Part shown: positions 1 to 48,356 of the stretch, one piece after another
Position numbering within the stretch: the first letter of the stretch is position 1
Layout of the letters: each line of letters opens with the position of its first letter
Source of the DNA: Blastocladiella emersonii ATCC 22665
Lineage: Eukaryota > Fungi > Blastocladiomycota
Direction: 5' to 3'
Assembly: GCA_025594325.1 (NCBI GenBank)
Contig: JANHCV010000008.1
Location: 1,364,001-1,428,000, forward strand
Length of the DNA stretch: 64,000 nt
Notes under the pieces: generated by a model
Databases searched by the model: none
The model's input: only the letters and a program-made list of their open reading frames with translations
Told to the model about the DNA's origin: nothing
Position numbers and translations under genes: made by a program

Positions 1-935
1 GCGAGGGTCTTGGACGGGTCGCCGATCATGTCGTAGAGCGGGTCGGACTCCCTGCTGGGCGTGTCGTAAATTTTATGAGTGAAAACGTGTTTGACTTGCC
101 GCTCCGAGCCGATGACCGGGTCGTCGATATCAATCACCTCGGCCACGAGAGCGCGGAACTTGAGATAATAATCACCCACGGTGCTGCCGGGTCGCGGCTC
201 GAGGGCGTGGAACCGCGCGACCCACTCGCGGTTCCAGTCCGGATCCGCCGCGTTCATGAACACGCGCCGCGCCTCCACATCGGTCGCGGTCTCGCGCAAA
301 TAGATCGAGAAGACGTGGTACAGCGGTTTCGGTACGTTGAACCGCGACAAGTAAAGCGCTTGGCACAGCGGGATTTCGGGCGTGAGCGCCTGTAGCATTT
401 TGAGGTACTCGGCCGCGTCGCGTGCTACGCGCATCCGCTTCGGACCGCGAATCCCAAGCAGCGGCGCTCGTTCGCGGATGACGTCAAAGTAGCCCGAGTC
501 GTAGGAACGGCGGTGCGTGCCTAGCATGTGCGCAGGGACCGGTGTTGGGGCAAGTTCCGGCTGAGTCGAGTTTGCTGGTATGGTCCGAGTCAAGTCGTGT
601 GCACGGCGCTGTGCTGTATCGCTGCACTCCTCGATAGAACGCCGGAGATTTTCCAGCTCACAAATGACGGCCGCAAGCTCGGTCAACCGCGACGAAGCAA
701 GCTCGGATGAGCATCGTTGAAGGTGTAGCGTAAGCGATAGGTTGATGTGCTTGAGACGCAGTTCCATGGTCTGGCGGACCACGGCTTCAAGCAACTGGAC
801 CAAACCTGCCTCGTCGGACGGCAACTCGCGCAAGGCGACGAATCGAGCAAGTGCGGGCGGCAAGTGGACGCCGTCGCGCGACAGAAAGGTAAATAGCCTT
901 GAAGTTCCGTTGCATGGAGTACATGGCGATTTCAT
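1..935 (-). CDS. Gag-like orphan family A, copy 1 (runs off window start)
   Basis: Manual translation from ATG at 935 (MKSPCTPCNGTSRLFTFL...APLLGIRGPKRMRVARDAAEYL...WNREWVARFHALEPRPGSTVGDYYLKFRALVAEV...) is open to base 1; absent from the ORF track because no stop lies in the window. Confidence 0.8.
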   Translation of the reverse strand, partial: MKSPCTPCNGTSRLFTFLSRDGVHLPPALARFVALRELPSDEAGLVQLLEAVVRQTMELRLKHINLSLTLHLQRCSSELASSRLTELAAVICELENLRRSIEECSDTAQRRAHDLTRTIPANSTQPELAPTPVPAHMLGTHRRSYDSGYFDVIRERAPLLGIRGPKRMRVARDAAEYLKMLQALTPEIPLCQALYLSRFNVPKPLYHVFSIYLRETATDVEARRVFMNAADPDWNREWVARFHALEPRPGSTVGDYYLKFRALVAEVIDIDDPVIGSERQVKHVFTHKIYDTPSRESDPLYDMIGDPSKTL

Positions 936-1038
936 GGTCGTGGGAGTGGTGTTAAGGCCTCGAGGGGGAGAGAGAGGAGGCGCTCGGGACGGTGGCGAAA
1001 TGGGCTGCGCCACACGACAAGAACGTGCGCCGAGGCAT

Positions 1039-1059
1039 CACATGATTGTTTGACGCGTC
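1039..1059 (-). promoter_or_regulatory. Composite MCB-N7-E-box element upstream of family A copy 1
   Basis: CACATG-attgttt-GACGCGTC, 104 bp from the ATG at 935. Confidence 0.7.
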
Positions 1060-1198
1060 TCACACGAGCAGTTCATCAATGCGGTCTGCCCTTTGCTATT
1101 CTCGCTCACTGTCTTCGCTTGCCTTCTACCCAACTGCTTCGCAACGTCGCGTCCGCACCCTGATGCCGCACCTCGGACGAAAACGCTCGCTGAACCGA

Positions 1199-1366
1199 TC
1201 AACGACAAGGCTGCCATATAAGAAGCGCGAGGAGTTCTGTCTCACAGTCTGGCCGCTTTCGTGAGACAGCGAATAGGCTGAGAGCTGGCGCCAGACCGTC
1301 TCCGTTGAACATGAGAAGTGTAAATAGCTCCATGGGTCTGTTGAATGGAGTGCAGGGCGATTTCAT
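1199..1366 (-). pseudogene. Degenerate 5' remnant of family A
   Basis: MKSPCTPFNRPMELFTLL...LAPALSLF matches the family N-terminus then decays; own degenerate element at 1437-1457 (CACATG-attcctc-GGCGCGTC). Confidence 0.65.
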
Positions 1367-1534
1367 AGCGACAGGATTGGCCTCACACCACCAAAAAGAG
1401 TCGAGAGTCCCCGAGCTCGGGTCGCTCATAGTTTGTCACATGATTCCTCGGCGCGTCAGCTCCGTTCGGCTGACCCCATCGAACGTGGCACTTCTCGCAG
1501 GCGTGATACTGCGATGAAGTCTATTTCAGCCCGC

Positions 1535-2995
1535 CTACACATCGAACAGCAGACCGCGCTTGGTCAGTACCGCCCTTGCCTCGTGCCAGACATCCAGCAC
1601 TGACTTGAGCGCCCACGCCTCTTCCTCCTTCAGCACGACAAGCAACGCGCCAAGTATTTCGGTGCACTGCTCGACCTTGAGCCTGTCGTTATTCGTCGAC
1701 AGACGGCGCCAGCACGCGCCGACGTTGTCGCGCAAGCGATTGATACTGTGAATCAGCTCCTTGGCCGTGCAATTGGCCGGCAACACGGTACACGCGCTCT
1801 CGGCACGCGCAACTTGGATCCCCTCGGCAAGCATCTTACCATAATTTTGGACGCGCTGATGCAGCTTTTTGCACTCGTGGGATGTGTGCGTCGCGGCCCC
1901 GTGCGCGTCGTGCTTGATGGATCGGCAGAAGGAACACCGATCCTTGCCACTGACGTTCTTGTGCAGGGCGCGCGATGTGTCTGCGGTCGGAAGTGGCGCC
2001 CGCGCGGGTGCGGCATCAGGTATGCGCAGCGAGGCAAAATGCGCAGCCAGTTCCGCAAGTGTCAGGTACTGCTCGCCGAGCATCTCGTTCACCGGGTCGG
2101 ACAGGCCGCCCATCACCTCGTAGAGCTTGTTCGAGAAGACGTGTTTGATATTCCGCTCGGAAGCAATGTTGCGGTTGTCGATATCGATCACCTCGGCAAG
2201 CAACGCGCGATATTCAAGGTGAAAGTCACCCACGGTACTGCCCGGCCGCGGCAAGAGCGCGAGAAATCGCTGGACCCAGTCACGGTTCCAGTTCGGATCC
2301 GCCGCGTCCAGGAACACGCGGCGCGCTTCCGCATCGGTCGCGTTCTCGCGCAAGAAGATCGCGAAGACGTGATACAGGGGTTTGGGCACGTTGAACCGCG
2401 CGAGATAGAGCGCTTGGGCGAGCGGAATCTCATAAGCAACAGCGCGCAACGAATCGAGAAAGTCATTTGGGTCCCGAGCGACCCGCATGCGCGCGGGCCC
2501 ACGGATCCCGAAGAGCGGTGCATCCTTGCGGATAGCCTGAAAAAAGGCCGTATTGTACGAGCGGCGGAACCCTTTCCGGTTGACGAGCGGGGCTGGCAGC
2601 TGGTGGGCCGTCGACGCACTAGAAGGGCCGTGTCCTGGCTTGGCAGAGCGGGAATCGGGTCCTTGTTGTCGTACACGTGCGCGATGCTCCTCGATGGCGG
2701 AGCTCAAGAGCTCGAGCTCCCGAACCATGGCGGCCAGTTCAGTTTCAGCCGAGGGCTCCAACATGGGCGCTAGCTGTTGCAGGCACCGCGAAAGAGACAA
2801 CCGAATGATTTGGATCCGCAAGTCCATGGTTTGGCGAGTGACGTCTCCCAATAGGTTTGAGAGCTCCTCGTCGCCGGTCGGGAACTCGTTTGAGCGGACG
2901 AAGCGAGCAAGTGCTGGCGGCAAGTTGCCGCACTCGTGCGCAAGGAAAGAAAATAGCTTTTCGGGTCCGTTGCATGGAGTGCATGAGGCTAACAT
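1535..2995 (-). CDS. Gag-like orphan family A, copy 2 (intact, ~486 aa)
   Basis: Open ORF; ATG at 2995 aligns with paralogue starts (MLASCTPCNGPEKLFSFL); capsid-like PRPGSTVGDFHLEYRAL and CSFC-x12-H-x4-C. Confidence 0.85.
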   Translation of the reverse strand: MLASCTPCNGPEKLFSFLAHECGNLPPALARFVRSNEFPTGDEELSNLLGDVTRQTMDLRIQIIRLSLSRCLQQLAPMLEPSAETELAAMVRELELLSSAIEEHRARVRQQGPDSRSAKPGHGPSSASTAHQLPAPLVNRKGFRRSYNTAFFQAIRKDAPLFGIRGPARMRVARDPNDFLDSLRAVAYEIPLAQALYLARFNVPKPLYHVFAIFLRENATDAEARRVFLDAADPNWNRDWVQRFLALLPRPGSTVGDFHLEYRALLAEVIDIDNRNIASERNIKHVFSNKLYEVMGGLSDPVNEMLGEQYLTLAELAAHFASLRIPDAAPARAPLPTADTSRALHKNVSGKDRCSFCRSIKHDAHGAATHTSHECKKLHQRVQNYGKMLAEGIQVARAESACTVLPANCTAKELIHSINRLRDNVGACWRRLSTNNDRLKVEQCTEILGALLVVLKEEEAWALKSVLDVWHEARAVLTKRGLLFDV

Positions 2996-3091
2996 GGTGT
3001 TGGGAGGGAGTATACGGTGGTTGCAAGGAGGCGCGGTGGTTTGAACGCGCTGCTGCGATCTGAAACGCAGGTTCGACCTGCGGCGGGACAT

Positions 3092-3112
3092 CACATGATA
3101 TCTCGACGCGTC
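3092..3112 (-). promoter_or_regulatory. Composite element upstream of family A copy 2
   Basis: CACATG-atatctc-GACGCGTC, 97 bp from ATG. Confidence 0.7.
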
Positions 3113-3555
3113 CACGCTCGCTCGCCAACCGCCCGGGCTCCCGTTCTCTCAGTCCGGTTCTCGGGGTGAGCCGCCCTCCTAGCTGACGCCCAGCGCTTAC
3201 GACCAACGTGCGTCCGAAGAGTGCCGTCGGATCCGACTCGCATCGGCAATGAATATGCAAACAAACGTCGTGCAATATTGTTATCAGTCAGATCAGAGCC
3301 ATCCCTTGCTGCATCGAGAGAGTCTCCTGCAGCAAGTCCTGGCCAGCCTTGAGCGCCCACGCCGCCTGCTCAATTGGCAGCGCGAGATACGCCGCGAGGC
3401 CCTCGACTACATTCGTAACATGATCCATGTCCTCGCTCTCAGCCATGCATCGAGGACCTGAGATACCTGATGCTGAGCCTGGCGGAAGGTAGCAACAGTT
3501 GGATAGTCGTTTATTCAGTTAATGATCGTAAGAATTTGGTTCCGCGTGCAAAAGG

Positions 3556-4959
3556 CTACTCGGCCCGATGCCAGCCGCGTTGTTTCCCCTCCGTTCGGGT
3601 TGCTCGCCACATCTCCTGGACAGACCGGAGAGCCCAGCCTTCCCGCTGAACTGGAAGCGCGAGAAGCGCTGCGAGGAGGTCCACGCAATCGCCAAGCTTG
3701 TACTTGTGCGACCTTGTCGGTAGAAAGCCAGAATAGCCACCAATGTACGTGCGCAGCTCTTGCATAGTGCGAATGAACTCGTCCGCCCCGCAGTCTCCCT
3801 GCCAAACTTGACGAGGGACCCGCGCTCGCGTCACGTAGATTCCCTCGGCGAGCATCGCGCCGTAGTGACTCGTGCGCTTTAACCTGCAGCACTCCTCGGT
3901 GGTATGCGATCCAGCGGCGTCTCGCTCACGCGGCAACGCGCGGCAGAAATGACACGACATATCACGTTTGACACTCCCGCGGCCCGGCGTTGGCCTCTCG
4001 ACTACCGTTGACGAAGTCGAGTGGCGGACTATTTTGAGCGAGGAAAGTTGACTTGCCATTTCGGCGAGAGAAACGGTTTCGAGGCCAACCAATTTGTTGA
4101 TGGCCATCGTCGCTGCGCCCAGGACCCGGTGCAGCTTGATTGAGAATATGTGCTTGATCTGCCGCTCGCTGCCAATAACCGGATCGTCAACATCGATGAC
4201 CTCGGCAAGCATCGCTCGGTACTCGACGTAAAATTCGCCCAAAGTGCTACCCGGTCGCGGCTCGAGTCTGCAAAACCGCTTGAACCACTCGCGGTTCCAG
4301 TTCGGGTCGGCTGCGTTCAGGAACACGCGACGCGCTTTGGAATCTGACGCGGTCTCGCGCAAGAAGATGCAGTAGACAGTGTAAACCATTTTGGGCACGT
4401 TATGCCGGGCGAGGTAGAGTGCTTGCGCGAGCGGGATACTTGGTACGAGCTTCCAGAGGTGGCCAACAAACTCGATTGCGTCTCGTGCGACCCGCGAGCT
4501 CGGCCCGTCGATGCCGAGGAGTAGCGCGGATTCTCGGATGACTCGGAAGCAAGCTGTATCATACGATACGCGAGGCTTGCCCGGCGTGTGCCACAGCGCG
4601 CTGACGGGCGACTGTGGTCGGGACGAGCGCTCGTTTCCAAGAGCACGGCGTTGCTCGATCGTGGGAGTCAACTCGTTGAGCTCATCAAGAAGCGCGACGA
4701 GCTCAGCCATCTCGGGGGCCGCCTGCTCGGGTAGACGGTGGTCAAGGCCGCAAGTGAGGGACACGCGAATCGACTGAATGCGCAAGTCCAGTTTCAACAG
4801 AATCACCGCTTTTAACAGCTGTAGCAGCTCAGAGTCGGCCGGGGGAAACTCGTTGGAGCGTGCGAAGCTGACAAGAATCGGCGGTAAACTGTCGCGCCGC
4901 CGCAAAATGAACGAAAACAGCTTTTCAGGTTCGTTGCATAGAGTGTCTGGTGTTTTCAT
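3556..4959 (-). CDS. Gag-like orphan family A, copy 3 (intact, ~467 aa)
   Basis: Open ORF, start MKTPDTLCNEPEKLFSF; same motifs; CHFC-x12-H-x4-C. Confidence 0.85.
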   Translation of the reverse strand: MKTPDTLCNEPEKLFSFILRRRDSLPPILVSFARSNEFPPADSELLQLLKAVILLKLDLRIQSIRVSLTCGLDHRLPEQAAPEMAELVALLDELNELTPTIEQRRALGNERSSRPQSPVSALWHTPGKPRVSYDTACFRVIRESALLLGIDGPSSRVARDAIEFVGHLWKLVPSIPLAQALYLARHNVPKMVYTVYCIFLRETASDSKARRVFLNAADPNWNREWFKRFCRLEPRPGSTLGEFYVEYRAMLAEVIDVDDPVIGSERQIKHIFSIKLHRVLGAATMAINKLVGLETVSLAEMASQLSSLKIVRHSTSSTVVERPTPGRGSVKRDMSCHFCRALPRERDAAGSHTTEECCRLKRTSHYGAMLAEGIYVTRARVPRQVWQGDCGADEFIRTMQELRTYIGGYSGFLPTRSHKYKLGDCVDLLAALLALPVQREGWALRSVQEMWRATRTEGKQRGWHRAE

Positions 4960-5042
4960 GGCATTGGAAGTGCTGTACGTGTCGCCGATCAGAGAGGAGA
5001 CGGTCCGCAAGCAAACAGCCTGGGTCGCCCAACTTGAAACGT

Positions 5043-5063
5043 CATGTGATAACTCGACGCGTC
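5043..5063 (-). promoter_or_regulatory. Composite element upstream of family A copy 3
   Basis: CATGTG-ataactc-GACGCGTC, 84 bp from ATG. Confidence 0.7.
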
Positions 5064-5296
5064 GCCTCCGCGTCGCTCTCGCAAAGCCCGTCACGATCAT
5101 GTCGTGCATGCTTGCCGACCGCTTCCGCCTCAACTCGAATGGAAGCGGCGACAATCATACACGCGCTCCCCGTCAAACTTTCGCTCAGGCTCACATGAGG
5201 TGTACATCGCCTGGTTGCTCACGTTTTGAACACCAGAGAGGGCATCAGCTGCAACACAACAAGTCAAAATATAGTTAAACACGCAGCGACTCACAC

Positions 5297-6766
5297 TCAT
5301 GCACCATTGAACCATCCCTTCTTCCTGCCAACAACGAGCGTCTCGCGCAACACATCACGGACCGCCTTTAGTGTCCGTTCCGACTGATCGATTGGGAGGG
5401 CAAGAAACGCTACAACGAGCTCGACGCTGTCCTGGACATTGATTTCGTTGTCGCCTCCAGATCCAGGCACCTGTGCTTGTGCCTTTCTTAGTGCCCGCCG
5501 CAGGTCCTGCAGATCCTGGACCAAGGCACGAATTGAGCCGTGTTCGCGCCAGAGGTCGCGCGGAGCGCTCACCTGCGCGATGAAGATTCCCCTGGCAAGA
5601 ACAACATCGTAAAACCGCGCGCGCAGCAGTTTGTGACACTCTTCAAGTGTATGTGTTGCTGCGCCGTGGCTCTCGCGTGTCAAGGTCCGGCAGAACAGGC
5701 AACGGTCATTGCCTGAGAGCTTCGCCTGGCTGGTGGCCAGTTCCGAGTCAACGGGGTGTCGCGACAGAGGCATTTTCGCTGAATCGGGAATCTTGATGGA
5801 AGCAAATTGGCGCGCCATGTCTGCGACGGTCTAGTTAGGATAATTGACCATTGAGTGGATCGCATCAGATGATTCGACAAACGCCTCGTGCAGCTTGTTG
5901 GAAAACACGTTCTTGACTTGGCGCTCGCTCCCGATCATTGGGTCGTCGATATTGATTACCTCGGCGAGAAGGGCACGAAACTCGAGATAGAAATTGCCCA
6001 CGGTGCTCCCTGACCGGGGCTGCAGCGCATGAAACCGGGCGACCCACTCGTGGTTCCAGTCGGGATTGGCTGCATTGAGAAAGACCTGCCGCGCCTCCGC
6101 ATCGGTCACGTCCTCGCGCAAGAAGATCGATACAAGATGGTACAGCGGCTTCGAAACGTTGAATCGCGAGAGATAGAGAGCTTGCGCAAGTGGGATGGTA
6201 GGCACAAGCTCCTGCAGCAGACTGAGATACTCGGCGGCGTCGCGCGCAACCCGCATCCGCTTCGGGCCGCGGACTCCAAGCAGCGGCGCTGACCTGCGAA
6301 TAGTCTGGAATTGATCCGACTCGTATGAGAGGCGGAAACCGCGAAAGACGCTGGCTGGTTTGCGCGGCGCGGACAGGTCATTCGATCGCGTGCGATTTTG
6401 GGTTGCAGGAAAACACTGAGCCCGAACATCCTGGGGAGTTTCGAGGCGTCGCTCGATCGCGGAGCTAAGCGTCTCGAGCTCACGAAGAACTTCCGCGAGC
6501 TCGGCCGCTTGCACGCGGTCCAGCTCGGACGACTTGTGCGACTGATGACGTGAGGCCTGGTCAAGAGACAGGTGGATGACGCGTATGCGCAGTTCCATGG
6601 ACTTGCGAGTCACAGCATCAAGCAGCTGGATGAGATCCGCGTCGCCAATCGGAAACGTATTCGATGCGACGAATTGAGCAAGTGCTGGCGGTAAGCTGTC
6701 GCGGTCTCTCAAAAGGAAGGAAAATAGCTTTTCTGGTCCGTTGCATGGAGTGCATGGTAGTAACAT
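5297..6766 (-). pseudogene. Family A copy 4 with a single in-frame TAG
   Basis: ORFs 5831..6766 and 5297..5818 share one frame; TAG at 5833-5831 where paralogues have K/R. Confidence 0.8.
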
Positions 6767-6869
6767 GGTGGCGTAGGTTTCATACGTATGCGTTGGAGAG
6801 CGGAAGCGCCGATCGAGGCGGCGATCGTCTCGCGGGCGCCTCGAGACACCTCACGTGCACTTGAAACAT

Positions 6870-6890
6870 CATGTGATAGCTCGACGCGTC
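6870..6890 (-). promoter_or_regulatory. Composite element upstream of family A copy 4
   Basis: CATGTG-atagctc-GACGCGTC, 104 bp from ATG. Confidence 0.7.
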
Positions 6891-7111
6891 GCCTCCCCGT
6901 CGCTCTCGTAGGCCCGTCGCGATCCTGTCACGCATGCTTGACGACCCTTCTCGCCTGAATTCTAATAGGAGCAGCCACGCTTACACACGCGCTCTCTGGA
7001 AAAGTGTTGCTTGGCCATTATGAAATGGGCGGCGTCGCCCTCCTCCTCCCGTTCCTAACACCGGAGAGGGCATCAGCTGCAACAAAACAAGTCAAAAAGA
7101 GCGGACCCCGC

Positions 7112-8580
7112 TCACGCATCATGGAACCACCCCTTCTTCCTGCCAAACGCGAGTGTCTCGCGTAACATTTCGCGGACCGCCTTGAGTGCCCACTCCTCCC
7201 GCTCAATTGGCAAAGCAAGAAACGCGGTGACGCGCTCGACGCTGTCCTCACCATTGACCTCGTCTTGGCCACCAGACTTTTGGACTTGTCCGTTCCGCAG
7301 TCCCCGCCGCAGGTCGTGCAAGTCGCGGATCAAGGTACGAGGTGGTCCGTGCTCGCGCTGAAGCTCGCGCGGAACACACGTACTTGTAATACGGATCCCC
7401 TTGGCAAGAATTGCGCTGTAGAACCGCGCGCGCAGCAGCTTATGGCATCCTTCAGCTGTACGAGTCCCTGCACCATGATCCTCGCGCGTCATGTCGTGCA
7501 GAACACGCAACGGTCCTTGACCAAGAGCTTGCCTTGGTTTCGGACCAAGTCGATGTCAAGGATGGGTCGCGACACGGATGCGTGCGGTGAGTCGGGAATT
7601 TCAACGGAGGCATGCTGGCGCGCCATCACGTCGGAGACCGTCCTGCCCGCGTAATTGACCACCTCGTGGAGCGCATCGGATGTGTCACCGAGCGCGTCGA
7701 GCAACCTGTTGGAAAATACGTGTTTGACTTGCCGCTCGCTGTCAATCATTGGGTCGTCGATGTTCATGACCTCCGCTAGCAGCGCGCAAAACTCGAGGTA
7801 AAAGTCTCCAACGGTGCTGCCCGGTCGCGGCTTGAGCGCCGAGAAGCGCTGGACCCAGCCACGGTTCCAGTTTGGATCGGCTGCATTGAGAAACACCTGG
7901 CGCGCCTCCGCATCGGTGGCTCTCTCGCGCAAGAAGATCGAGAGAACATGGTACAGCGGTCTCGACACGTTGAATCGTGAGAGATAGAGAGCTTGCGCGA
8001 GCGGGATAATGGGGACGAGCTCCTGCAGCGCTTTGATATAATCGGCTGCATCGCGCGCGACCTGCTTTCGTTTCGGACCGCGGATCCTAAGCAGCGGCGC
8101 TGATCTGCGAATGGTCTGGAATTGATCGAGCTCGTATGAGAGGCGGAAACAGCGAAAGCCGCGGACTGGTTTGCGCGGCGCGGGTGCGATAGTTGATTGC
8201 TTGTGGTTTGGAGCGCCAGGCGTCGACTGACGAGCTCGAAAGTCATGGGGAGCTTCGAGGCGTCGCTTGATCACGGAGCTGAGCGTCTAGAGCTCGCCGA
8301 GAATGGCCGCGAGCTCGGCCTCTCGCGCGCGCTCCAGCTCAGTCACATCGAGCGACTGCTTACGCGCGGCCTGGCCAAGAGTCAAGTGAATGGCGCGTAT
8401 GCGCAGGTCCATGGACTGGCGGATCACGGCATCAAGCAGCTGGATGAGATCCGCGTCGCCGATCGGAAACGCGTTTGATGCGACGAATTGAGCAAGTGCC
8501 GGCGGCAAACTGACGCGGTCTCTTACAAGGAAAGAAAAGAGCCTTTCTGGTCCGTTGCATAGAGTGCATGATGGTGGCAT
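7112..8580 (-). pseudogene. Family A copy 5 (nonsense + frameshift)
   Basis: TAG at 8289-8287 replacing E; frameshift inside the zinc finger near 7495; finger His replaced by Arg. Confidence 0.8.
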
Positions 8581-8663
8581 GGTGCATTGAGCTTCATAGG
8601 TATGGGTTGGAGAGCGGGAACGCCAATCGCGTTGCGCCCCTTGAAACCTCCCGCGCGAAACAT

Positions 8664-8684
8664 CATGTGATCGCTCGACGCGTC
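8664..8684 (-). promoter_or_regulatory. Composite element upstream of family A copy 5
   Basis: CATGTG-atcgctc-GACGCGTC, 84 bp from ATG. Confidence 0.7.
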
Positions 8685-8787
8685 TCCTCCATCATGTTTC
8701 CCCTCCCCCCCCCCCACCACGATCTCGTTACAGGAAACAATGTTTTAAAACTGCGAGTCAGCAGAATGTATTCATTCATCCCGATCC

Positions 8788-9830
8788 TCACAACGACCGT
8801 TCGGCGTGATACCACCCGCGTTTCTGGGCTTCCGTGCGAGCTTTCCGCCACATCTCCAGCACGAATTGAAAGGCCCACTCTTCTTGTTCGATTGGGAGCA
8901 CAAGGAACGCTCTGAGAAGCTCCACGCAATCCTCGATACTGCGTGCAATTGACGGCTTTGACAGTGAGCCGCGGTAATCCTTGATGCTCGCGCGCAGCTC
9001 CTGCATCGTCCGAACCAGGTCTTTTGCTGAACACTCGGCATGCCGCATTTGGCGCGGAACGTGTGACCGCGGAGCGTGGATCCCCTCGGCCAGCTTCACG
9101 CTGTAGTACGTCGTGCGGCGCAGTTTGTGGCACTCCTCAGTCGTATGTGATCCGGCGCCGTGGTTCTCGCGCGCCATAGCGCGGCACAAGGCGCATCGGG
9201 AATTTCCCTTAACTCTGCCGGCGGGACGCAGCGGTCGCGCCGGTTGAGGCGGTGGCGACGTCGAGCGATCGGGGAAAGTCACAGAAGCAGCTTGAGCTGC
9301 CATTTCCGCGACAGAAACGGTTGAGAGACCGACCAAGTCGTTTAGGGACCCCATGGCAGTCCCGAGGGCCTCGTGCAGCTTGTTTGAGAAGACGTGCTTG
9401 ATCTGCCGCTCGGAGGAGACCATGGGGTCGTTGATTGGAATCACCTCGGCGAGCAGCGCGCGGAACTCGGCAGAGAAATCGGCCACGGTACTGCCTGGGC
9501 GTGGCGTGAGAGCGTGGAGCCGCGCGATCCACTCGCGATTCCAGTTCGGGTCAGCGGCGTCCAAGAATACGCGGCGTGCCTCGGAACCTGAGACCGTCTC
9601 GCGCAGAAAGATGGCATACACGCTGTACAGCGGCTTGGACACGTTGTACCGTGCGAGGTAGAGTGTCCGCACGAGCGGGATACTGGGTACAAGATTGCGG
9701 AGGAGCTCGAGAAATTCGACCGCGTCGCGCGCGACTCGCATGCGTTTTGGTCCCTTGATTCCAAGCAACGGGGCGTTTTCGCGGATAACTTTACCCCCCA
9801 GACCCTCTCTGCGTGGCACGTAAACACGCA
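8788..9830 (-). pseudogene. Family A copy 6, 5'-truncated
   Basis: Homology starts at IRENAPLLGIKGPK; N-terminal helical domain and promoter missing, replaced by the 3' end of the RanBD sequence. Confidence 0.75.
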
Positions 9831-9881
9831 CCACGTGTCTATTGAACATTCGGGCTGAACGAGCAAATAGAGCCTATTGCA

Positions 9882-10484
9882 TTATTTAATCAGAGAATGG
9901 CCAAGGCGTGAAGTAAAAGCGGGGGGATGGCAGAACAGGTGATCGGCGTCGGGGGCGGGGACGCTGGGCCCGTTCGGGGAGGCGGCGCCGGCGTTGAGGT
10001 CGTTGTTCCACTTCTGGGCCTCCTCGAACTTGGCCTTGAAGCGCTGGGCAATGTCCGAGTTGGCGAAGCGCACGGCGAGCATCTCAGGCTTGACCTCGTC
10101 CTCGGAGAAGTCGGCGAGGGCGGTCCAGACCCACGAGCGGTCCGAGCCGACGTTGGGGTTGAGCTTCATCTCGGGGGCAATGACGTGGTTGGCGCAGAGC
10201 TTGAGCGTCTTGTCGCGGCGCATCAGCACGCGCACCTTGCCCGACTGCTTGTGCATCATGAGGCGCATCTCGCCCGTGCCGCGCTCCTTCCACTCGGTCG
10301 TGGCCTTCTCGAACCGGAACAGCTTGGCGCGCCTGTATCATTACGAGTGGATTGTGAGTGGAGGTGGTCGCGGCGGTGAGACGCGTCGCTCACGCCGGCC
10401 GTGGGATACGCGTGAAAAGAAACGAACGCACATCCTGAACAGGGGCGTCTCGTCGTCCTCGGCCGTCTTCACCTCTACCTTCTC
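9882..10484 (-). CDS. Ran-binding domain (RanBP1/Yrb1-like) exons without their own start
   Basis: [18 protein letters not shown] / [24 protein letters not shown]...KLCANH...SDRSWVW...[22 protein letters not shown]; intron 10431-10333 (GTGCGT...TACAG). Confidence 0.85.
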
Positions 10485-12328
10485 GACGAGACAGTGAGAA
10501 AAACAATCACGTCGCGCCGAGATGACCAGTCGCATACCTTTGACTCAGCGACAGGGTCGCACGGAGGGATCACGCACGCGACCTGTGAGGTTGGCGTAAG
10601 TTTGTCGGGAGAAGCGGTCTGCGGTTTGCCAACAACTGGTTGCACATCAGCAAGCTCAACGCGGAACATCAAAGAGAGTTGCGCCACGATGGCCGAAAAA
10701 GAAGGCCTCGCGTTGCTGTCCCCGGCCCAGCACTCCTTGACAAGCGCCCACAGCTGACTCGAGTAGCTGTAAGAACAGGTCGGCGCAGCGGGACGGACGC
10801 CCTCCTTGATCCAGTCCTTGACAATCCCGTCGTCGTGCTCCTCGTAGAACGGCAGCTTGCCCGCGACCACCTCGAAGGCGAGCATGGCGAACGAAAACAC
10901 GTCGGACTTGAGGTCGAGCTTGACGCCGTAAGTGTACCGCTCCGGCGCAATCCAGCGCACGTTCCAGAGAGAAGTGGCAACCGAAACAGACGAGCGGCTG
11001 GCGGCCGAAAGCACGCGCGCCATGCCGAAATCGGCGACCTGCGCGCGGCCGTAAAGGTCAACGAGCACGTTGTTGGCCTTGAGGTCGCCGTGCAGCATGT
11101 CCTTCGAGTGCAGGTACGCCATGCCCATGGCCGTCTCGGTCAGCAGGCGAACGTGCTGGGCGGGGCGGTCCGCCGCGTACTTGGACAGGTCGCCGTGCTC
11201 CATGAGCGGCATGACGAGGAACGGCGTGTCGGACGTCAGCGAGAAACCGAGCAGCGGCAGCACGTGCGGGTGGCGCATCTGGCTCCACACGAGGGCCTCC
11301 TTGGCGACGAGGTCGATGCCGTTCTGGTCGGCGGCCGTGTGGCCGAGCAGCGGGATCAGGCGCTTGATGGCGACGGGCGTCTTGGACGCGATCCACGTGG
11401 CGCGGACGACGAGACCGAACCCGCCGCGGCCGAGCGGCTGGCCCTTGTCCTCGTCAAAGTCGAACGAGGTGACGGCGAGCGGCTTGAGCGCCGTCTCGGC
11501 GTCCGAACGCTCGGCCGAGACGCCCGAGTTGCGCGAGATGGCCGAGTGCATGTGCTTGTACAGCTGCTGCAGGAGGTCGAGCACCTCGTCGGTCTGCGCC
11601 TTGGACGCGTCGATGCGCTGATGCAGCGCGGCAAGGGCCTCGCGCGCATCCTGGTTGCCGAGCGCCAGGCCGCGGTACAGGTCCGAGTGGTGGGCGGCGA
11701 GCATGTCCTTGAACGAGACGAGGAGGTTGATGCGATCGCGCTCGGCCGCGGCCTTGAACTCGGCGGCCAGATTGGCCGAGGTCATGTCGAGCTTGAGGGC
11801 GGTGCCCAGCTCGCCGAGGACCGTGACGAGCGTGGCGCCTGCGCGCTCGAACGGCGCGTTGTAGTCGGTTCCGGCGAGCACGCGCTTGAGGAGCGTCGAC
11901 TCGCCGAGCTTGGTCGCGGCCGCGTTGGTCTCAAGTAGGACGCCGTGCATGGTGGTGACGTGGCCAGCGAGCGAAGGAGGTAATTTCTCGCTCGTGCCGC
12001 GGACCATCATGAGCGCACAGGTGATCGAACAACAAAATCCCAGTAGCGCCGCGAGCAGGTGCATCGGTTTCTTGGCCGACTTGACGAAGCGGTCCAGCTT
12101 GCTGACCTGGTCGGCCACGTCGTTGAGGCCAATTTCGGCCGTCGTAGAGAGTTCCATGGTGGCAATTTTATATATCTTTGTTCGGAAGCTCGAGGCAGCC
12201 CCCTGGGATTTTATACTCGAGCAACCACTTGGACCAACACGCTGCCTCCGCGATCCGTCGTCTGACGACGCAGAACGATTTCGGACAAGGTTTCGAAATT
12301 TGTCCGTGATTTGTCCATAATTTGTCAT
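10475..12328 (-). CDS. TKL-type Ser/Thr kinase with N-terminal helical (MLKL four-helix-bundle-like) region
   Basis: LGRGGFG, VAIK, HGDLKANNVLV, DFG and DVFSFAM motifs intact; helical N-terminus ending KRVLAGTDYNAPFERAGATL; start at 12328 or 12157 (GCCACCATGG context). Confidence 0.85.
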   Translation of the reverse strand: MTNYGQITDKFRNLVRNRSASSDDGSRRQRVGPSGCSSIKSQGAASSFRTKIYKIATMELSTTAEIGLNDVADQVSKLDRFVKSAKKPMHLLAALLGFCCSITCALMMVRGTSEKLPPSLAGHVTTMHGVLLETNAAATKLGESTLLKRVLAGTDYNAPFERAGATLVTVLGELGTALKLDMTSANLAAEFKAAAERDRINLLVSFKDMLAAHHSDLYRGLALGNQDAREALAALHQRIDASKAQTDEVLDLLQQLYKHMHSAISRNSGVSAERSDAETALKPLAVTSFDFDEDKGQPLGRGGFGLVVRATWIASKTPVAIKRLIPLLGHTAADQNGIDLVAKEALVWSQMRHPHVLPLLGFSLTSDTPFLVMPLMEHGDLSKYAADRPAQHVRLLTETAMGMAYLHSKDMLHGDLKANNVLVDLYGRAQVADFGMARVLSAASRSSVSVATSLWNVRWIAPERYTYGVKLDLKSDVFSFAMLAFEVVAGKLPFYEEHDDGIVKDWIKEGVRPAAPTCSYSYSSQLWALVKECWAGDSNARPSFSAIVAQLSLMFRVELADVQPVVGKPQTASPDKLTPTSQVACVIPPCDPVAESKVCDWSSRRDVIVFLTVSSRR

Positions 12329-12430
12329 CAATAAAGCCGCCCATCTTTTAACTGTGATCCGTCCATGTCGGAGCCTCCCGACAGAAGCTGGCCGTCAAGG
12401 AGCAGCTGCGAGACATTGAGCGCGAGACAT

Positions 12431-12451
12431 CACGTGATTGTTTGACGCGTC
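12431..12451 (-). promoter_or_regulatory. Composite element upstream of the kinase
   Basis: CACGTG-attgttt-GACGCGTC, 103 bp from the ATG at 12328. Confidence 0.75.
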
Positions 12452-14792: not shown

Positions 14793-14813
14793 GACGCGTC
14801 GCAAAAACACGTG
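14793..14813 (+). promoter_or_regulatory. Composite element upstream of a putative spliced transcript
   Basis: GACGCGTC-gcaaaaa-CACGTG with a further CACGTG immediately downstream. Confidence 0.6.
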
Positions 14814-16066
14814 TCGGTCACGCGCACGTGACACAGGTTGGCGTGGACGTGAGCGCGAGCGCGCGTCGGCCGAGCGAGTGACTCTTCGCCACGCCGCGCG
14901 CGGTCCCCGCTCCCTCACTCATCACCACTCGCTGCAATGTATCACCCATCCGACAACGAAGCACACTGCGACCTCGACGCACGGCATTCATGCGGCCACC
15001 GTCAAAAGGTACGCGTCATTCCGCTCCGCCGCGGCCGCCGCCGCGCGCTTGGCTCCCATCGCGCCGACCGTCGTGTTGCGGTTTCGGAGCGGTGTGCCCG
15101 GCGTGGTGCGCGTCATCCACTGCTCGCTCCACGGTCGACGCACCGTGAGACCAGCGGCGTCGTCGCCGCTACGCGTGCGCGCCGTCGTGCGCGCGCTCCC
15201 CCGCGCTCATGCTTCGGGTGCGGCACGGCGCAGCGCAGGTGGACCCCACCGGGCTACCAGCCGCGTGCGCGCTCATCAAAGGTGCTGACACCTGTGCGGT
15301 GCCCATGTAGCCGCCGGCGCGCGTCCGCCACCAGGGACTCAACATTTGGCGACTCATGGACCTGAGACCATCGAGCCAGCATCGCGCGCGACGGTACGCC
15401 GTCAACACCACACCACTTGCGCCTGCTGTATGTGCTCACGCCACGCGCTCGCGCCAGTAGCGCCGACGGGCTCGCTCAAGCGGTTCGGCCGCGCCCACCG
15501 CGTGCGTCAAGTCCCAGTCGCAGGTACGCTCGACACTTTTCGTCGCTGCGCAAGAGTTGGCGCGCGACTGACATGCTCGCTCACATTGCTCCTCGTAGCC
15601 CCTCGTGATCCACTGGTCTCTCGCTGCACCATCAACCCGCCACCTCTCGATGGCCCATCTGACGAGCAAGATCCGCAAGCTGTAGGGTGCCGATTCCTAA
15701 GACGACTTGGTACGCCCTCGTCACACGCCGCTCGAGGCGCAGCGCGACTCACATGAGCTCTTGGACCTTTCTTGCTTGTAGCAGCGATCTCTGACCACCA
15801 TCTCGCCCAGCCGGTTTCTGTACTCGGGGTCGCGGCGCGACCTGACCGCGGATCGCAGCAAGTGCGACGCGCACGCGGTTCGGGTCACGGGCGGCGGCTC
15901 CGAGTGCGGAGGCCTGGTGCTGGCGACGGCGTCTGCGGTCCGCTCGGGTACCTGCTTGTCGTGCATCGTCGTCGCGCACGGGCCGGGATTCCGACTCGCA
16001 TGCCGCGCGACCCGCGGCGGTGGCGACCTGACCTGTATCTGAGATCTCCCTGTACGCAATACACTC

Positions 16067-17157: not shown

Positions 17158-19567
17158 ATGTCTGCTCCACTCGCATCGTGGCCGTCGTGGTCCGACGATA
17201 TTCTCGGCGTCGTGGTTGTTGTCGTCGGCGTGTCGACCACGCTATTCGTCGCCGTGCACATGTTCATGCACTTGGTACGTCGCTCCACCGTGTCCCGAGA
17301 CGCATGAGCGGTCCACTCACTCACAGCCTCGCCGTCCGCGTAGTGGTGCTTGTACGGCATCGCGCAGATAGGCCTGAACGAGGGCCGCGAGGGCGCGGTG
17401 CAGACCTTCAACCAGGGCGAGGGCAAGCTGCGCGTGTTCCTGTGCGTGGTCGTTGGCGCGCTGTACGCGGGGTTCGTCAGCTTCTTCCTCGGCACGGTGC
17501 TGCTCATCATGGCGCACAAGGACTTTGCGCCCGAGTTCATGCGCACCGACTGGGAGCCGATCCCGCGCGACACGCTGCGCACCGTGATCGTCGCCTTCTT
17601 CTTCATCTACGCCGCGCCCGCCGTCATCTCGACCGTCACCACGGCCATCGCCTTCTCGCACGACCGCATCAAGCTGCGACGCCTCGACCGCGTCAAGCGC
17701 GAGGCCGACGACGCGCGCCGCGCCGGTGCCGCGGCCGAGGAGGCCGGGTTCTCGCATGCGGCGGTGCCCGAGGGCCAGCAGTCGTACGCCTGGGACAAGG
17801 ACGTGATCATCCTGGTCCCGACGTACCAGGAGCCGCTCGCCAACCTGCTGTCGACCATCAACGCCATCACCGAGTCCGAGTACCCGCTCGACAAGGTCCA
17901 CGTGCTTGTCGGGTTCGACGACGACAGCGACAAGACGCTCACGGCCATGTTCACCATCGAGCGCATCCTCAACGGCGACGTGGTCCAGGGGTTCGGTGGC
18001 AACGACGAGTCGGCGCTCCGCGTCTCGGCGCCCGGCTCGGCGCTCTCGGGCATCGGCAGCGATCTCGGCAACAGCAGCGACCTGAGCAGCACCACGCTGC
18101 CGTCGTACGACGACCTGCCGAGCGCGCTGGGCCGCAACAAGTACAACGGGCTGCTCAAGATCGCGCACCAGTCGCGCTCGTCGGTCGACGTGCGCGGGAC
18201 CAGCAGCACCGTGTCGGGGGCCACGTCGCCGCTGTCGGCGGGGTCCATGGTCTCGTTCCGCTCGCACGCCGACCGTGACCCGAGCCCGCGCGCCATCGAC
18301 ATCCACTACCGCAACGTACAGTTCACCATCGCGCGGTACGAGCACGGCGGCAAGCTGCACACGCAGGCCAAGATGTTTGCGCTCGTCGAGGAGCGCGTTC
18401 GTGCTGGCGTGTACCCGCCCGACGCGCTGCTGCTGTTCGTCGACTCGGACACGACGCTCGTGCCGTCCACGGTGCGCAAGTTCGTCGACCACTTTGCCGT
18501 CCACCAGCAGCGCGCGTGCGCGACCGGGTTCATCGTGTCGCGCAACGGGCACGCGAATAGCTGGCTCCAGAAGATGCAGGATGTACGCTCGCTCTCTCAA
18601 GACGCGGTCGGTGTGCGGGACTCGGAACTGACCCCCGCGCGCGCGCGTGTTCACGTAGGCCGAGTACATTTTCATGCAGGTCTCGATGCGCTACGTCGAG
18701 GCGACGTTCGGCAGCGTGACGTGTCTGCCGGGCGCGCTGACCATGATCAAGTACGCGACCATGCACGAGCTGGCGAAGATCTACTTCCACCAGCCCGACG
18801 TCGACTCGACGTTCGAGTTCTGCCGGCGCAAGCTCGGCGAGGACCGGTTCCTGACGCACCTCGCCATGGAGTACCTCGGCCCGTACTCGATCGGGTTCGT
18901 GCCCGACGCCGTGTCGAAAACCGAGGCGCCCAACCTGTTCTACGACCTGCTGCGGCAACGGCGGCGGTGGCTGTTGGGCTCGCTGACCAACGAGCTGTAC
19001 ATGGTCACGACGCCGAGCTTCTTCGTCAAGTACCCGGCGCTCGTCATCTTCCGCATCATGACGGTGATGCGGCTCGGCGGGTCGACCTTTTACCTCGCGC
19101 TGATCGAGTGCATCCTCCTCGCCATCAAGCGGCCCGACCAGGTGACCCCGCTCGACGTGTTCGTCCTCGTCTTCTCGCCGCTCCTCTTCTGGCTGATCCT
19201 CACAGGCTGGGCCGTGTGGCAGCGCCGCATCAAGTCGCTCGGGTTCTTCTTCGCGTACCTGCTCACCAACCAGGTCATGGAGATCTTCTACTACGGGTAC
19301 ACGCTCTGGACGCTGCGCGAGCGCACGTGGGGCGGGCCGCGCGCCGTCGGCGAGGCCGAGACGGTCGAGATCGTGGCGGAGAAGCCGGGCGATGGTAAGG
19401 TGGGCGGAATCGCGTCGTACTCGATGCCGTACACGCCGCCCAAGGGCGGGGCCCCGATCCCCGCTCCCGCGCGCACGGCCAGCAGGATGACCATGGTCAT
19501 GACGAGCGGCGGGGTGCCCGTCGCCCAGGGCTCGCCGTTGGCGCAGACTCAGACTCAGACTCAGTAG
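17158..19567 (+). CDS. Chitin synthase-like GT2 membrane glycosyltransferase, paralogue 1
   Basis: Exons 17158-17274, 17344-18582, 18659-19567; motifs VPTYQEP, FVDSDT, TCLPGA, LGEDRFLT, QRRRW; TM segments at both ends. Confidence 0.88.
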
Positions 19568-19862: not shown

Positions 19863-22425
19863 ATGCAGCCCGTGAGCGCCTTATGTATGCTACTCCATGC
19901 AACGCGCTGTTTATGTCGATAATAACGCGCTGAAACGCCGCATAGCGCGAAGCTCGCTCGAGCGCTACCACGACCTTGTGCCGCGCCTGCTCGCCCACCT
20001 CGGCGTGCCGGACGGCGGCGACGTTGCGCTGCCCGTGTCTTTCGATCCAAACGTCTGCATTAGGCTTCGACGCGACTTTCTTGCACTCGATCTGGACGCA
20101 TGCCCGTTGGACGACGTGATCCAGGCGCTCACGAGCGACGCGCTACTCGCGCTCGAGCCCGCCGAGCGCGCGCAGTTTCACGTCGTGCCCGTGGGCTTGT
20201 TCACCGAAACTCTCGTGACACTAGCCTGCGCGCCAGCCGTCGACTTGGCGAGCAGCAGCATAGACTAGTTTGCGCGTTGGATTCTTGATCGGCTGACCGA
20301 CGCGCACGACTTCGTCCTTCTCGTCTGTTCGGGATCCGTGCAAGCGATCTACGTACTCTTCCTCCGCCGCCTCTGTCTTTCAATCCAGTGCGCGGCGCTT
20401 CGCTTCGGCGGCGTGCGCAACGCCGCGGCGACGCAGGCGGTGGACGCCGCGATTGCTGTGCTCGTCGCGAGTCTCTCGAGCAGCGGCGAGCCGTGGACAC
20501 TTGGTCTCATGCAGCGGTTTATGGACTTCGAAGCCGGTTTGGGACCGCGCGAGGCGCCGACGCTTGCGTTTCTGAGCTTTGTTCCGTGGATCTTTGAAGC
20601 GGCGAGCAACGCGGTCGCCGCGTGGCCATCGCTCGCGCTGCATGCTCCAAAGCTTGATTGCGAGGAGATGAGCTCGCGGATCGTGCAAACTCTCCTCACA
20701 CATGTCGCTCGGTCGGCCCACGCGATACAGTCCCTCCCTCCCGAGCTTGCAGCGGAACTTGCCGAGTGGTCGGTCGTCGATAGTAGTGGAGTGGCGCGTC
20801 GCGGTGCCGTTGCTCCACGCTCGTCCTTGGATGCACGCTTGGCGGCACCGACCCGCCAAGAGCTTGAGCCCGTCATGAACGGCTCCTCAACCAGTGATTT
20901 CTCGTGGACGCGAAGGAAATGCCGCCTGGAATCCATGGTTGTTGTTCCCAGCTTGCCGAGCGAAGCGGGACGTAAACGGCGTGGCCAAATCGTTTCGGAC
21001 TCGGACGGCGCAATGCCAAGTCTTCTCTCATTGGTACGCTCCCGCGCTAGTAGTCGTTCGTCACGTTCGCTCGCTGAAAGCGTTAGTGTGTGTGAAGCCC
21101 GAACCCGTTCAACTCGGCACTCCAGAGTCTGAATGCCCGCCACCAGTTGCATCGCCGCGCGCGCAATCTCCGCTCCAAGCTGCCCCGCCGTCGCCAGTCC
21201 CGCTCCTAGCACAATCAAGCGCTCACGACGAGTACGTGCCTCGCGAACAGTGTGACGTACCACCATCCTCCGCGCAATCAGCTCCATGGCCCTCGACGCG
21301 AGCCAGCTGCAGGGCACCGTCGCCGCGACCGCGACCGCGTCCGCCGTGCCGCACTCTGTTATATCCGGCGTGGTCGTGCTGCGCTCTCTCGAATCGCTGC
21401 TTGCCACGGACGTCGTCATGCACGCCGTCACTGAGCTCCTGTGCGGGTTCGCAGACTTGATAGCAATTGATCTCACTCCAGTCCTTTGCCGCCGCCACTC
21501 GCTCGACGAGTACAAGGTCCTGTGGGCCGCCGTTTCGAACGAAGAAGCGCTTTCTCACCCGCTCGCCATCATCGCGTCACCCTCCCGCGCCATCGCGAAA
21601 GCGCAGCGGAATATGGTCCTCCTAGCGTGCGTCGCCGACCACCTGCCCGCCGCGCTCGGCACCGCCGCCAGCACTGCCGTCGCCGCGGGCACCGACCGGC
21701 TACACGTCATGGTCGCCTTCGACCGCCTCAACCGGCCCGAGTGGACGCGCTGCATTGACTGGTTCGCCCGCGCCATGTCGTGCCCCCGCATCCGCGACCT
21801 CGGGTCGGGCACAGACAACGTCCCGAAACGCCTGCTCTGCCGGCTACACGCCGCGCTCAAAGCACACCCGCTCGACCCGTTCCTCCCGTCGCTCGCGTCC
21901 CCCGCGGCGTTAAGGACACACCCGCCGCTGCGCCCGTTCGTCTTCGACGCTCAGGTGTGCCACCTGGTGAGCCGCGCCGCGGCTACAATGGCGGTCGCGG
22001 ACCCAGGGTATCGCGGCCACCTGGTCCGCCGGGTCGAAGAAATCGCGCGCGCGGGGGATCTCACGGCGGGGTCCGCGCGTACTTCGGGTTCGCGTGCGCG
22101 TATCTCCCGTCGCGCGCCAGACTGGTCGCATCGGCTGCGGTGGCGGACGGTTACGCGCTGGAAGGCGCCGAGGAGACTGTTCGTATTGCTATCCCGTGAC
22201 TCGAGCAGCAGCAGCAAACAGACGCCACGGCTCCCGCGTGCCCCGAGCCCGCGCAGCGGCTACACTTCCACAGGGCGCGCGACCGGCCAAGGGAATGGGA
22301 ATCGGTCCTCATCAGGCTGCCGGGCTGGGACGAGTTCAAGCGCAAGCACGCGGCCGCGCTTGACACGGTTGCGCGGCGCGAGCGGAGCGCGCGCGAGCGG
22401 GAACGGCGCGTCTGAACACGAGTGA
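19863..22425 (+). pseudogene. Orphan family B (Ulp1-like N-domain + C-terminal domain), copy 1, disrupted
   Basis: Phase-1 first intron (GTATGC...CATAG) as in the paralogues; in-frame TAG at 20266-20268; frameshift near 22070-22140 in the C-terminal domain (ends ...GLPGWDEFKRKH in another frame). Confidence 0.7.
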
Positions 22426-29400: not shown

Positions 29401-29976
29401 TCCAGCGCACTGTGCGCCAAGATGGTCAAGAACTTCGATACTCACGAGCAGTACAAGGACCACGAAAAGGTCAAGATCAAGCAGTTCCCAATCGTGCCCG
29501 CCTTTGCGATGACGGTGCACGGGGTCCAAGGCGTGACCAAGAACGCCATCATCTTGACGGATCCGTGCCCAGCTGGCTCGTCTGGATCGATCAACGGGTC
29601 GTCGCTGTACGTTGCGCTCTCGCAGCTCCGCCAGAGCGCGTTTCTGTGGGTCCTCCATCCGATCCCGGACGGCGTGTACGACGTCATGGTCCCTGATCCG
29701 CGGGCCGTGGCCGAAGACTTGCGGCTCCAGGCGCTAGACGTGTTGACTGAGGGCGCGTTCGCTCACGGACAAACCGTTACGCAAAACCACCCACGAGTCG
29801 CAGAGCTCTTCTGTCACGCGATGCAAGAGCATCGCCAGATCAAGAGCGACAAGGAGGAGAAGCAGAAGGCCCGCGAACGAGAGTACTCAAGGCGGTATCG
29901 CGAGCGTAGGCGCGAGCAGAAGCGCGCTCCAGAATTGCATGAGCAGCGGCGGAGCAAGAGGCTTCGCGATAGATAG
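26450..29976 (+). mobile_element. Decayed Helitron-type Rep/Helicase fragment (PIF1 helicase), lacking the Rep catalytic core
   Basis: FRPPELENLSWYEF and EKYSRMALLLL (Helitron post-Rep motifs); Walker A GTGGTGKS, IIDEFSM, AGDHLQLPPV, FAMTVHGVQG, LYVALSQ; frameshifts near 26930 and 28790. Confidence 0.75.
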
Positions 29977-33548: not shown

Positions 33549-33569
33549 GACGCGTCGATCAATCACGTG
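33549..33569 (+). promoter_or_regulatory. Composite element upstream of chitin synthase-like paralogue 2
   Basis: GACGCGTC-gatcaat-CACGTG, ~850 bp before the ATG at 34420. Confidence 0.6.
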
Positions 33570-36857: not shown

Positions 36858-36956
36858 GTAATCATGTGACGCGAGACAGTATGAGCTGCGTCCTCTGGAA
36901 GCGAGCGGCTCTTCTCCCGTCCGCTCTCCCGAAGACGAACCACATGCAACGACACC

Positions 36957-47985: not shown

Positions 47986-48074
47986 GGTGCGGAGAGTGGT
48001 GTTTAGGTTCGTTGGGTAGGAAAGCGCGTCCCGTCGTGGCGCCACAGCCGCGGCGCGATGCGTCACACCGAGCT

Positions 48075-48095
48075 CACATGATATTGAAACGCGTC
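48075..48095 (-). promoter_or_regulatory. Composite element upstream of family A copy 7
   Basis: CACATG-atattga-AACGCGTC, 90 bp from ATG. Confidence 0.6.
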
Positions 48096-48335: not shown

Positions 48336-48356
48336 GACGCGTCGAAATATCACGTC
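48336..48356 (+). promoter_or_regulatory. Composite element upstream of LRR family copy 3
   Basis: GACGCGTC-gaaatat-CACGTC, 106 bp before ATG. Confidence 0.65.

Follow-up and report, generated by a model that had tools for sequence, protein, structure and literature searches.

Copies of a Gag-like gene family in the window

How does a fungal chromosome come to carry a row of intronless genes that resemble the gag gene of a retrotransposon, with no other retrotransposon parts in or beside the row? The question is raised by a 64,000-nucleotide stretch of contig JANHCV010000008.1 of the early-branching fungus Blastocladiella emersonii ATCC 22665 (Blastocladiomycota; positions 1364001-1428000, about 60% G+C), hereafter called the window, in which a tandem array of such genes occupies positions 1-9849 and a pair of further copies lies at 46.5-52.0 kb. 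Our answer, to which we attach a probability of about 0.6, is that these copies belong to a stand-alone gene family that descended from the gag of the fungus's own Ty3/gypsy elements, lost the long terminal repeats (LTRs) and pol, became immobile, and has been kept by selection. Two lines of evidence carry this answer: a profile-level relationship between the family and the Gag proteins of two resident elements, and a low ratio of nonsynonymous to synonymous substitution rates (dN/dS) among the copies.

A direct-repeat search of positions 1-12000 revealed six in-register copies, c1 to c6, with a start-to-start spacing of 1674-2054 nucleotides (nt). The long open reading frames (ORFs) of the family lie on the minus strand, and the copies are arranged head to tail. 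Outer bounds of each copy were taken from tblastn, using as queries the three fully open copies (c2, c3, and c8), and eight copies were recovered in total, six in the array and two (c7 and c8) in the distal pair. Three are fully open, namely, c2 (1535-2995; 486 amino acids [aa], ATG at 2995), c3 (3556-4959; 467 aa, ATG at 4959), and c8 (50560-52035; 491 aa). The 3′ part of c1 (1-935) is cut off at the start of the window, and the 319 visible codons are stop-free. At the edge of the array, c6 (8788-9849) is open but short at its 5′ end; its 353-aa ORF comprises the central domain, finger, and tail described below and lacks the N-terminal helical part. The remaining three copies are broken: c4 (5297-6766) is of full-length extent and has one in-frame stop, c5 (7112-8580) is likewise of full-length extent and has one stop and at least one frameshift, and c7 (46533-47988) has two stops and one or two frameshifts. 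A 93-nt piece of gene tail (3315-3407, minus strand), recovered by the direct-repeat search, sits as a remnant in the spacer between c2 and c3. Protein identity among the window copies ranges from 41 to 57%.

Repeat and domain searches of the window found no LTRs, protease, reverse transcriptase (RT), or integrase in or beside the array, and the direct-repeat search found no LTR-like repeats in the spacers between copies. Scans of the window for tRNA genes and Rfam families gave no matches. An earlier interpretation made from the DNA letters without database searches (the sequence-only reading) had described six head-to-tail copies with a remnant and two more at 46.5-52.0 kb, all without LTRs, target duplications, protease, RT, or integrase. 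The copy count is borne out by the direct-repeat and tblastn searches, as is the absence of element features by the repeat and domain searches.

Relationship to the Gag proteins of resident Ty3/gypsy elements

Two Ty3/gypsy elements that are not members of the family served as comparators. The first is an LTR retrotransposon in the window itself (57827-63198, minus strand), recognized by its LTR pair, target duplication, and pol domains. Its 217-nt LTRs are 98% alike and are flanked by a 5-bp target duplication, and it encodes RT-ribonuclease H (RNase H) and integrase domains, with pol in two frames. ORF1 of this element, in the gag position (61578-62960), is open and 460 aa long. The element also contains two internal tandem duplications (186 nt and 138 nt, each present twice). 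The second comparator comes from the DNA around eight annotated relatives of the family (loci L001 to L008), which was scanned in six frames with hidden Markov models (HMMs) of the family. At L005 (17338-22572, minus strand), amid family copies, lies a different element with an intact 1744-aa Ty3/gypsy Gag-Pol, whose domains are RVP (residues 656-761), RVT_1 (895-1048), RNase H (1117-1243), and integrase (1404-1609). No LTR pair was found for this Gag-Pol, since the stretch sampled extends only 127 nt beyond the ORF on its upstream side. Resident elements are therefore present and have been recently active, as seen in the intact Gag-Pol at L005 and in the LTR identity of the window insertion.

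The key comparison was made in hhalign between a 42-row family profile, built without the row for the L005 Gag, and residues 1-450 of that Gag. The central profile of the family matched with a probability of 94.6% (E = 7e-8, score 55.5, 152 columns). The match of the full-length family profile ran over 260 columns and aligned family positions 29-324 with Gag residues 6-269. Against the score of 55.5, pieces of the pol part scored 14-19, 100 shuffles gave a mean of 12.9 and a maximum of 22.1, and the reversed sequence scored 16.1. The central-domain HMM also matches the L005 Gag-Pol directly, at about residues 110-269 (18.6 bits, E = 2e-4, profile positions 7-165). In addition, the L005 Gag carries a finger, C-x2-C-x14-H-x4-C, at residues 440-463, of the same long-spacer type as in the family.

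ORF1 of the window element gave a weaker match of the same kind. With the first family profile, the hhalign score was 31.4 (P = 0.003), none of 150 column shuffles scored above 20.6, and the reversed control scored 13. A deeper profile, in which the L005 Gag was one of the rows, raised the score to 38 (probability 68%, P = 5e-5), and the profile without the L005 Gag row gave 38.2 (E = 4.8e-5). When 110 non-family ORFs of the window were compared with the deeper profile, ORF1 ranked top with 33.6, the null scores having a mean of 11.6 and a maximum of 18.1. ORF1 and the L005 Gag share no mutual similarity by BLASTP, and the family is 15-26% identical to the resident Gags.

As judged by these profile alignments, the central domain and the N-terminal part of the family are homologous to the Gag region of a genuine Gag-Pol and run colinear with it. 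The sequence-only reading had proposed descent from a Ty3/gypsy-type Gag on the strength of a motif resemblance; that descent is upheld here by a different route, the profile comparison with the Gags of resident LTR elements. The family copies do not have the features of a mobile LTR retrotransposon, which the two real elements nearby do show. As far as sequence can tell, then, the family is derived from gag and freed of its element, as a co-opted gag gene is.

Divergence, open reading frames, and selection

Pairwise comparison of 43 central domains gave a median identity of 28%, with every pair below 80%. Array neighbors are about as divergent as copies of separate loci; only the window subfamily departs from this, with about 60% identity both internally and to the copy at L001. 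Near-identical copies, by which an active or recent repeat would be recognized, were not seen in this set, the top identity being 75% and the lowest synonymous divergence (dS) 0.37.

The 14 closest pairs have dS values of 0.37-1.9, and their dN/dS runs from 0.15-0.17 up to 0.42. Among the window ORFs, for which dS is saturated, dN/dS is 0.13-0.40, and differences are most frequent at third codon positions, followed by first and then second positions. Of 39 near-complete copies, 28 have the central domain and tail within a single stop-free stretch. For c2, c3, and c8, about 3.2-3.8% of all single-base changes create a stop, so that an unconstrained copy would stay open with a probability below 1e-4 after 0.2 changes per site. 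Set against this neutral expectation, the high fraction of open copies argues for selection at the protein level through most of the history of the family.

By these estimates, the family is under purifying selection, and the broken copies would be later losses. Open and broken copies stand side by side, which is the birth-and-death pattern of gene turnover. The sequence-only reading had suggested birth-and-death evolution, and had named a dN/dS of about 1 combined with a lack of expression as one outcome that would speak against a domesticated family. The computed values lie well below 1, and the open copies do adjoin broken ones.

Protein architecture and predicted structure

Both the alignment and the structural model give the same order of parts, that is, N-terminal helices, then a central block of strong conservation, a Cys-Cys-His-Cys finger, and a tail that is again helical. 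In c2 these correspond to residues 11-110 (N-terminal helical part), 150-330 (central Gag-like domain, nt 2006-2548), 354-375 (finger, nt 1871-1936), and 376-479 (tail). The model was produced by AlphaFold on a 23-row alignment and has a mean predicted local distance difference test score (pLDDT) of 82; a run on eight rows gave a pLDDT of 62 and was not used. Two long helices are predicted at residues 42-110, followed by a disordered linker (residues 112-148) and a compact all-helical domain at residues 150-330, with about 10 helices in 180 residues and a pLDDT of 90-98. A second linker leads to the finger at residues 354-375, and the predicted helical tail extends to near residue 479.

The finger of the window copies reads C-x2-C-x12-H-x4-C. 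Across the family, C-x2-C-x(10-16)-H-x4-C is present in 30 of 36 tails, with a spacer of 12 in 20 of these. The canonical retroviral knuckle, C-x2-C-x4-H-x4-C, was not found, the family having x12 in place of x4. Thus, the domain order and the presence of a finger stand as they had been described from the DNA alone, whereas the finger is not of the retroviral spacing.

Size and distribution of the family

An exhaustive profile search of 1.84 billion representative proteins returned 16 relatives, all hypothetical proteins of B. emersonii, 15 of which are encoded on JANHCV010000008.1 (locus tags 006651 to 006885) and one on contig 1. Word-based protein searches returned one relative only. In the six-frame scans, each contig-8 locus carries several copies, most of them ordered head to tail along a single strand at intervals of 1.2-2.5 kb, and the 21-25 kb sampled at each of the seven contig-8 loci hold 3, about 12, 8, 8, 5, 7, and 3 copies. 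With the window included, about 60 copies are present in about 250 kb of sampled DNA. On contig 8, they lie at 0.19, 0.70, 0.88, 0.95, 0.98, 1.15, 1.28, and 1.36-1.43 Mb, a span of at least 1.2 Mb. Because the sample is biased to places with an annotated member, the total may be as low as about 60 or as high as a few hundred. None of the roughly 60 copies showed an LTR, a target duplication, or a linked protease, RT, or integrase. The window copies noticed earlier are real, but the scale suggested by them was far too low, since they form a small part of at least about 60 copies sampled over at least 1.2 Mb.

The lone member off contig 8 (L008:9791-10705, JANHCV010000001.1) is single and open, within a 543-codon stop-free stretch, and is flanked by two housekeeping genes, IML1 and one for a pyridine-nucleotide oxidoreductase. 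Its annotation covers a fragment of 175 aa only. Elsewhere, some gene models merge adjacent copies: the model P0002 contains three central domains, and P0004 spans 5 kb and fuses family copies with a piece of a Harbinger-like transposon. Copies c2, c3, and c8 appear to have no gene model, since they were absent from the results of the protein searches. The genome paper (PMC9730499), in which annotation was ab initio, does not mention the family.

A 22-nt promoter-like motif upstream of the copies

The window spacers have in common a 22-nt motif, GACGCGT-N5-WATCAYRTGA, in which an ACGCGT box is paired with a CAYRTG box; 13 matches occur in the window, where 0.08 would be expected. Six of the eight window copies have the motif upstream, each time on the minus strand, at 1038-1059 (c1), 3091-3112 (c2), 5042-5063 (c3), 6869-6890 (c4), 8663-8684 (c5, with one mismatch), and 48074-48095 (c7). 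For c1 to c5, about 85-125 nt separate the motif from the start codon, and the gap is similar for c7. The scan of the window found no motif upstream of c6 and no clear motif upstream of c8. In all sampled DNA, 15 of 52 copies have the motif within 1.1 kb upstream.

The same motif occurs at genes unrelated to the family. On the minus strand, it lies upstream of a protein kinase gene (12430-12451), with a further match at another unrelated gene (53379-53400); on the plus strand, it precedes other unrelated genes (14793-14814, 33549-33570, 48336-48357, and 55980-56001). Since it also precedes genes such as the kinase gene, it is a promoter motif of the genome rather than a mark of the family, and it looks like a common promoter element of B. 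emersonii that the family copies use. The suggestion that each copy has its own promoter element therefore holds for c1 to c5 and c7 in that the motif is there, and fails in that the motif is not family specific.

Neighboring repeats and genes

Other repeated units share the window with the family. A second lineage-specific unit of two adjoining ORFs, without a Pfam match, is present on the plus strand at 20269-22422, at 22615-25252, and at 56624-57829 plus 63186-63998. Its three copies are 26-50% identical, and the third is split by the insertion of the LTR element at 57827-63198. Three plus-strand stretches (36885-38463, 39254-39850, and 48399-50146) belong to a third repeated family, whose match to leucine-rich repeats is weak (E = 2.6e-4); the last of these copies is placed between c7 and c8, whose starts are about 4.0 kb apart. 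A 2.45-kb Harbinger-like transposon (DDE_Tnp_4) is present both in the window (52613-55054) and at L002 (14542-16990) in copies that are 98.7% identical. It includes a short stretch weakly like the family tail (24 bits).

Two chitin-synthase-like paralogues on the plus strand (17350-19398 and 34726-36591) have a mutual protein identity of 62%. Stretches of these genes are about 80% identical in DNA to a chitin synthase gene at L001 (11157-17526) that stands beside the family copy of that locus, a likeness next to family copies that points to segmental duplication of whole neighborhoods. Genes for PIF1-like or other helicases recur beside the arrays, at 26562-29976 in the window (plus strand), L003:20736-21826, L006:16502-17584, and L001:3927-6917. 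The window helicase gene is apparently divided between two frames, and none of the helicase genes beside the arrays showed a Helitron Rep domain.

Evaluation of alternative explanations

Several results weigh against an origin of the family from Gag. No curated Gag model (Retrotrans_gag PF03732, PNMA PF14893, and their kin) was matched at threshold, and the window copies, searched as single proteins, gave no Pfam matches. PNMA was matched by one of the 43 single central domains, at an E value of 0.031. The gene model P0002 does match PNMA (E = 9e-5, 22.4 bits against a cutoff of 25); this match was rejected, as it sums three repeats and is equalled by a false match to His_Phos_1, and a sub-threshold Retrotrans_gag match of the same model was rejected as evidence on the same grounds. 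Searches of PDB sequences with a single protein and three profiles returned no capsid protein and only noise, such as a designed helical bundle. A Foldseek search of PDB and BFVD with the confident but untrimmed full model returned nothing at E ≤ 0.001; the top-placed capsid protein was PNMA2, at rank 31 (E = 1.7), and two tungrovirus coat proteins had E values of 0.14-0.53. A resemblance to Gag at the level of curated models was thus not recovered for the window copies. Nor did the search with the untrimmed model give a significant match for the capsid-like nature that the sequence-only reading had suggested, although the central domain was modeled at a pLDDT of 90-98. The profile search found no relative in any other organism among the 1.84 billion proteins, and the public annotation, which is purely ab initio (PMC9730499), makes no calls for c2, c3, and c8. 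Finally, both comparator Gags match no known Gag model or structure and are Gag by their position in the element only. This last point has a second side: that the resident Gags match neither Pfam nor PDB accounts for the family's own lack of matches. By these searches, the Gag proteins of this fungus fall outside current models.

The blank results from Pfam, PDB, and Foldseek would also suit a family unrelated to Gag, a lineage-specific helical protein whose profile matches arise from shared helical make-up. We regard this as very improbable, given that the controls (shuffles, reversed sequences, pol part, and 110 ORFs) reached 12-22 against scores of 55.5 and 38, that the score grew with profile depth, and that HMMER alone picks up the L005 Gag. 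Even harder to credit is descent in the reverse direction, in which a host family came first and a member was captured by Ty3/gypsy elements as their first ORF. The comparator Gags, matching no known Gag family or structure, are indeed untied to the Gags of other organisms. However, two Gags that are dissimilar by BLASTP carry the domain at the same place, one of them fused in frame to protease, RT, and integrase; the colinearity extends to the N-terminal part and the finger; and the profile search found no relative of the family in other fungi.

Two further explanations accept the Gag origin and differ in what became of the genes. The copies could be selfish DNA or a relic of no use to the fungus, formed when a piece containing gag only was amplified into a tandem repeat of long monomers, within a region of one chromosome that is poor in genes and rich in transposons. 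Such a view takes in the many copies concentrated on one contig, the one or two genes called per 21-25 kb sampled stretch, the three broken copies among eight in the window, and the LTR elements, Harbinger-like transposon, and PIF1-like helicase genes around the copies. It is nonetheless unlikely, because most copies are open despite a dS of 0.4 to >1, dN/dS is well below 1, neither homogenization nor young copies are seen, the promoter motif is held in common with host genes, and a lone open copy lives in a housekeeping neighborhood. Alternatively, the proteins could be Gag-derived regulators, like the vertebrate SCAN zinc-finger proteins, in which the domain would serve only for pairing and genes would be controlled through binding of the finger and tail to DNA or RNA. 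The order of the parts, with a helical domain of pairing type ahead of a finger, fits this picture together with the tandem clusters, as did a weak match between the first part of the central domain and the Max helix-loop-helix (E = 0.34) until it disappeared with the deeper profile. Each protein has a single finger and no known DNA-binding domain, and a median identity of 28% fits conflict better than gene regulation; we consider a regulatory role decidedly unlikely.

We favor descent of the family from the gag of resident Ty3/gypsy elements. After loss of the LTRs and pol, tandem and segmental duplications would have raised the number of genes, and their sequences would have become extremely diverse, with most copies kept open by selection on the protein. 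Both activities of a Gag may have been retained: the N-terminal helices and the Gag-like domain would bind to themselves or to other Gag proteins, and the finger would hold nucleic acid. The family-specific helical tail may contribute a new function. As to role, our best guess for so large and fast-diverging a set is that the proteins would co-assemble with the Gag of an incoming or resident retroelement and poison it. A broader and rather doubtful extension, offered tentatively, is that more than 1 Mb of one chromosome could serve as a store of diversified Gag-derived proteins, an inherited defense repertoire against retroelements or viruses in which each variant would have a target of its own and the set would be renewed by birth and death, like immune receptor families.

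If the family did descend from resident gag, a Ty3/gypsy Gag gave rise in an early-branching fungus to dozens, and probably hundreds, of stand-alone genes, most of them still open, and to a family more diverse than any known co-opted gag family. The copies would then form a natural series showing how a capsid-type protein changes once free of its element, and they may be an example of a large Gag-based defense set. In the public annotation of this model fungus, most of the family genes are absent or wrongly joined, and the element Gags of Blastocladiomycota appear to be beyond the reach of current Gag models.

Comparison with known systems

The closest relatives are the Gags of the resident Ty3/gypsy elements (Metaviridae), with which the family shares a homologous central domain, colinear N-terminal helices, and a downstream long-spacer Cys-Cys-His-Cys finger. 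It differs from them in having a promoter-like motif upstream of individual units and a family-specific helical tail of about 100 aa, and in having no LTRs or pol. In addition, family copies stand in tandem, unlike Ty3/gypsy elements, which are dispersed with target duplications.

Gag co-option is known mainly from animals, where Arc, PNMA, RTL/SIRH, PEG10, Fv1, and the SCAN domain are examples. Like these, the family is stand-alone, intronless, apparently Gag derived, and under purifying selection as estimated from dN/dS, and the succession of N-terminal helices, linker, and Gag-like domain recalls Arc. It has no significant sequence or fold match to any of them, PNMA2 being listed weakly in the fold search. 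It also has a far higher copy number and divergence, tandem arrays over more than 1 Mb, and a fungal host. The proposed mode of action would have its nearest analogues in mouse Fv1, sheep enJS56A1, and the truncated Gag p22 of yeast Ty1, Gag relatives that disturb how related elements assemble or uncoat. Each of these is a single gene or the element's own product, whereas the family is a large diversified set.

Our literature search found no report of this family, nor of such a gag-derived family in fungi, and a kingdom-wide screen for co-option (PMC10799480) was made without Blastocladiomycota. In fungi, co-opted gag genes are known only as Crtg12-14, three single-copy genes of Ty1/copia or Bel-Pao origin in Dikarya (Wang and Han 2021, PMC8321522). 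The B. emersonii family resembles them as a probable case of fungal Gag co-option and differs in its likely Ty3/gypsy origin, its size of about 60 to a few hundred copies, and its place in Blastocladiomycota.

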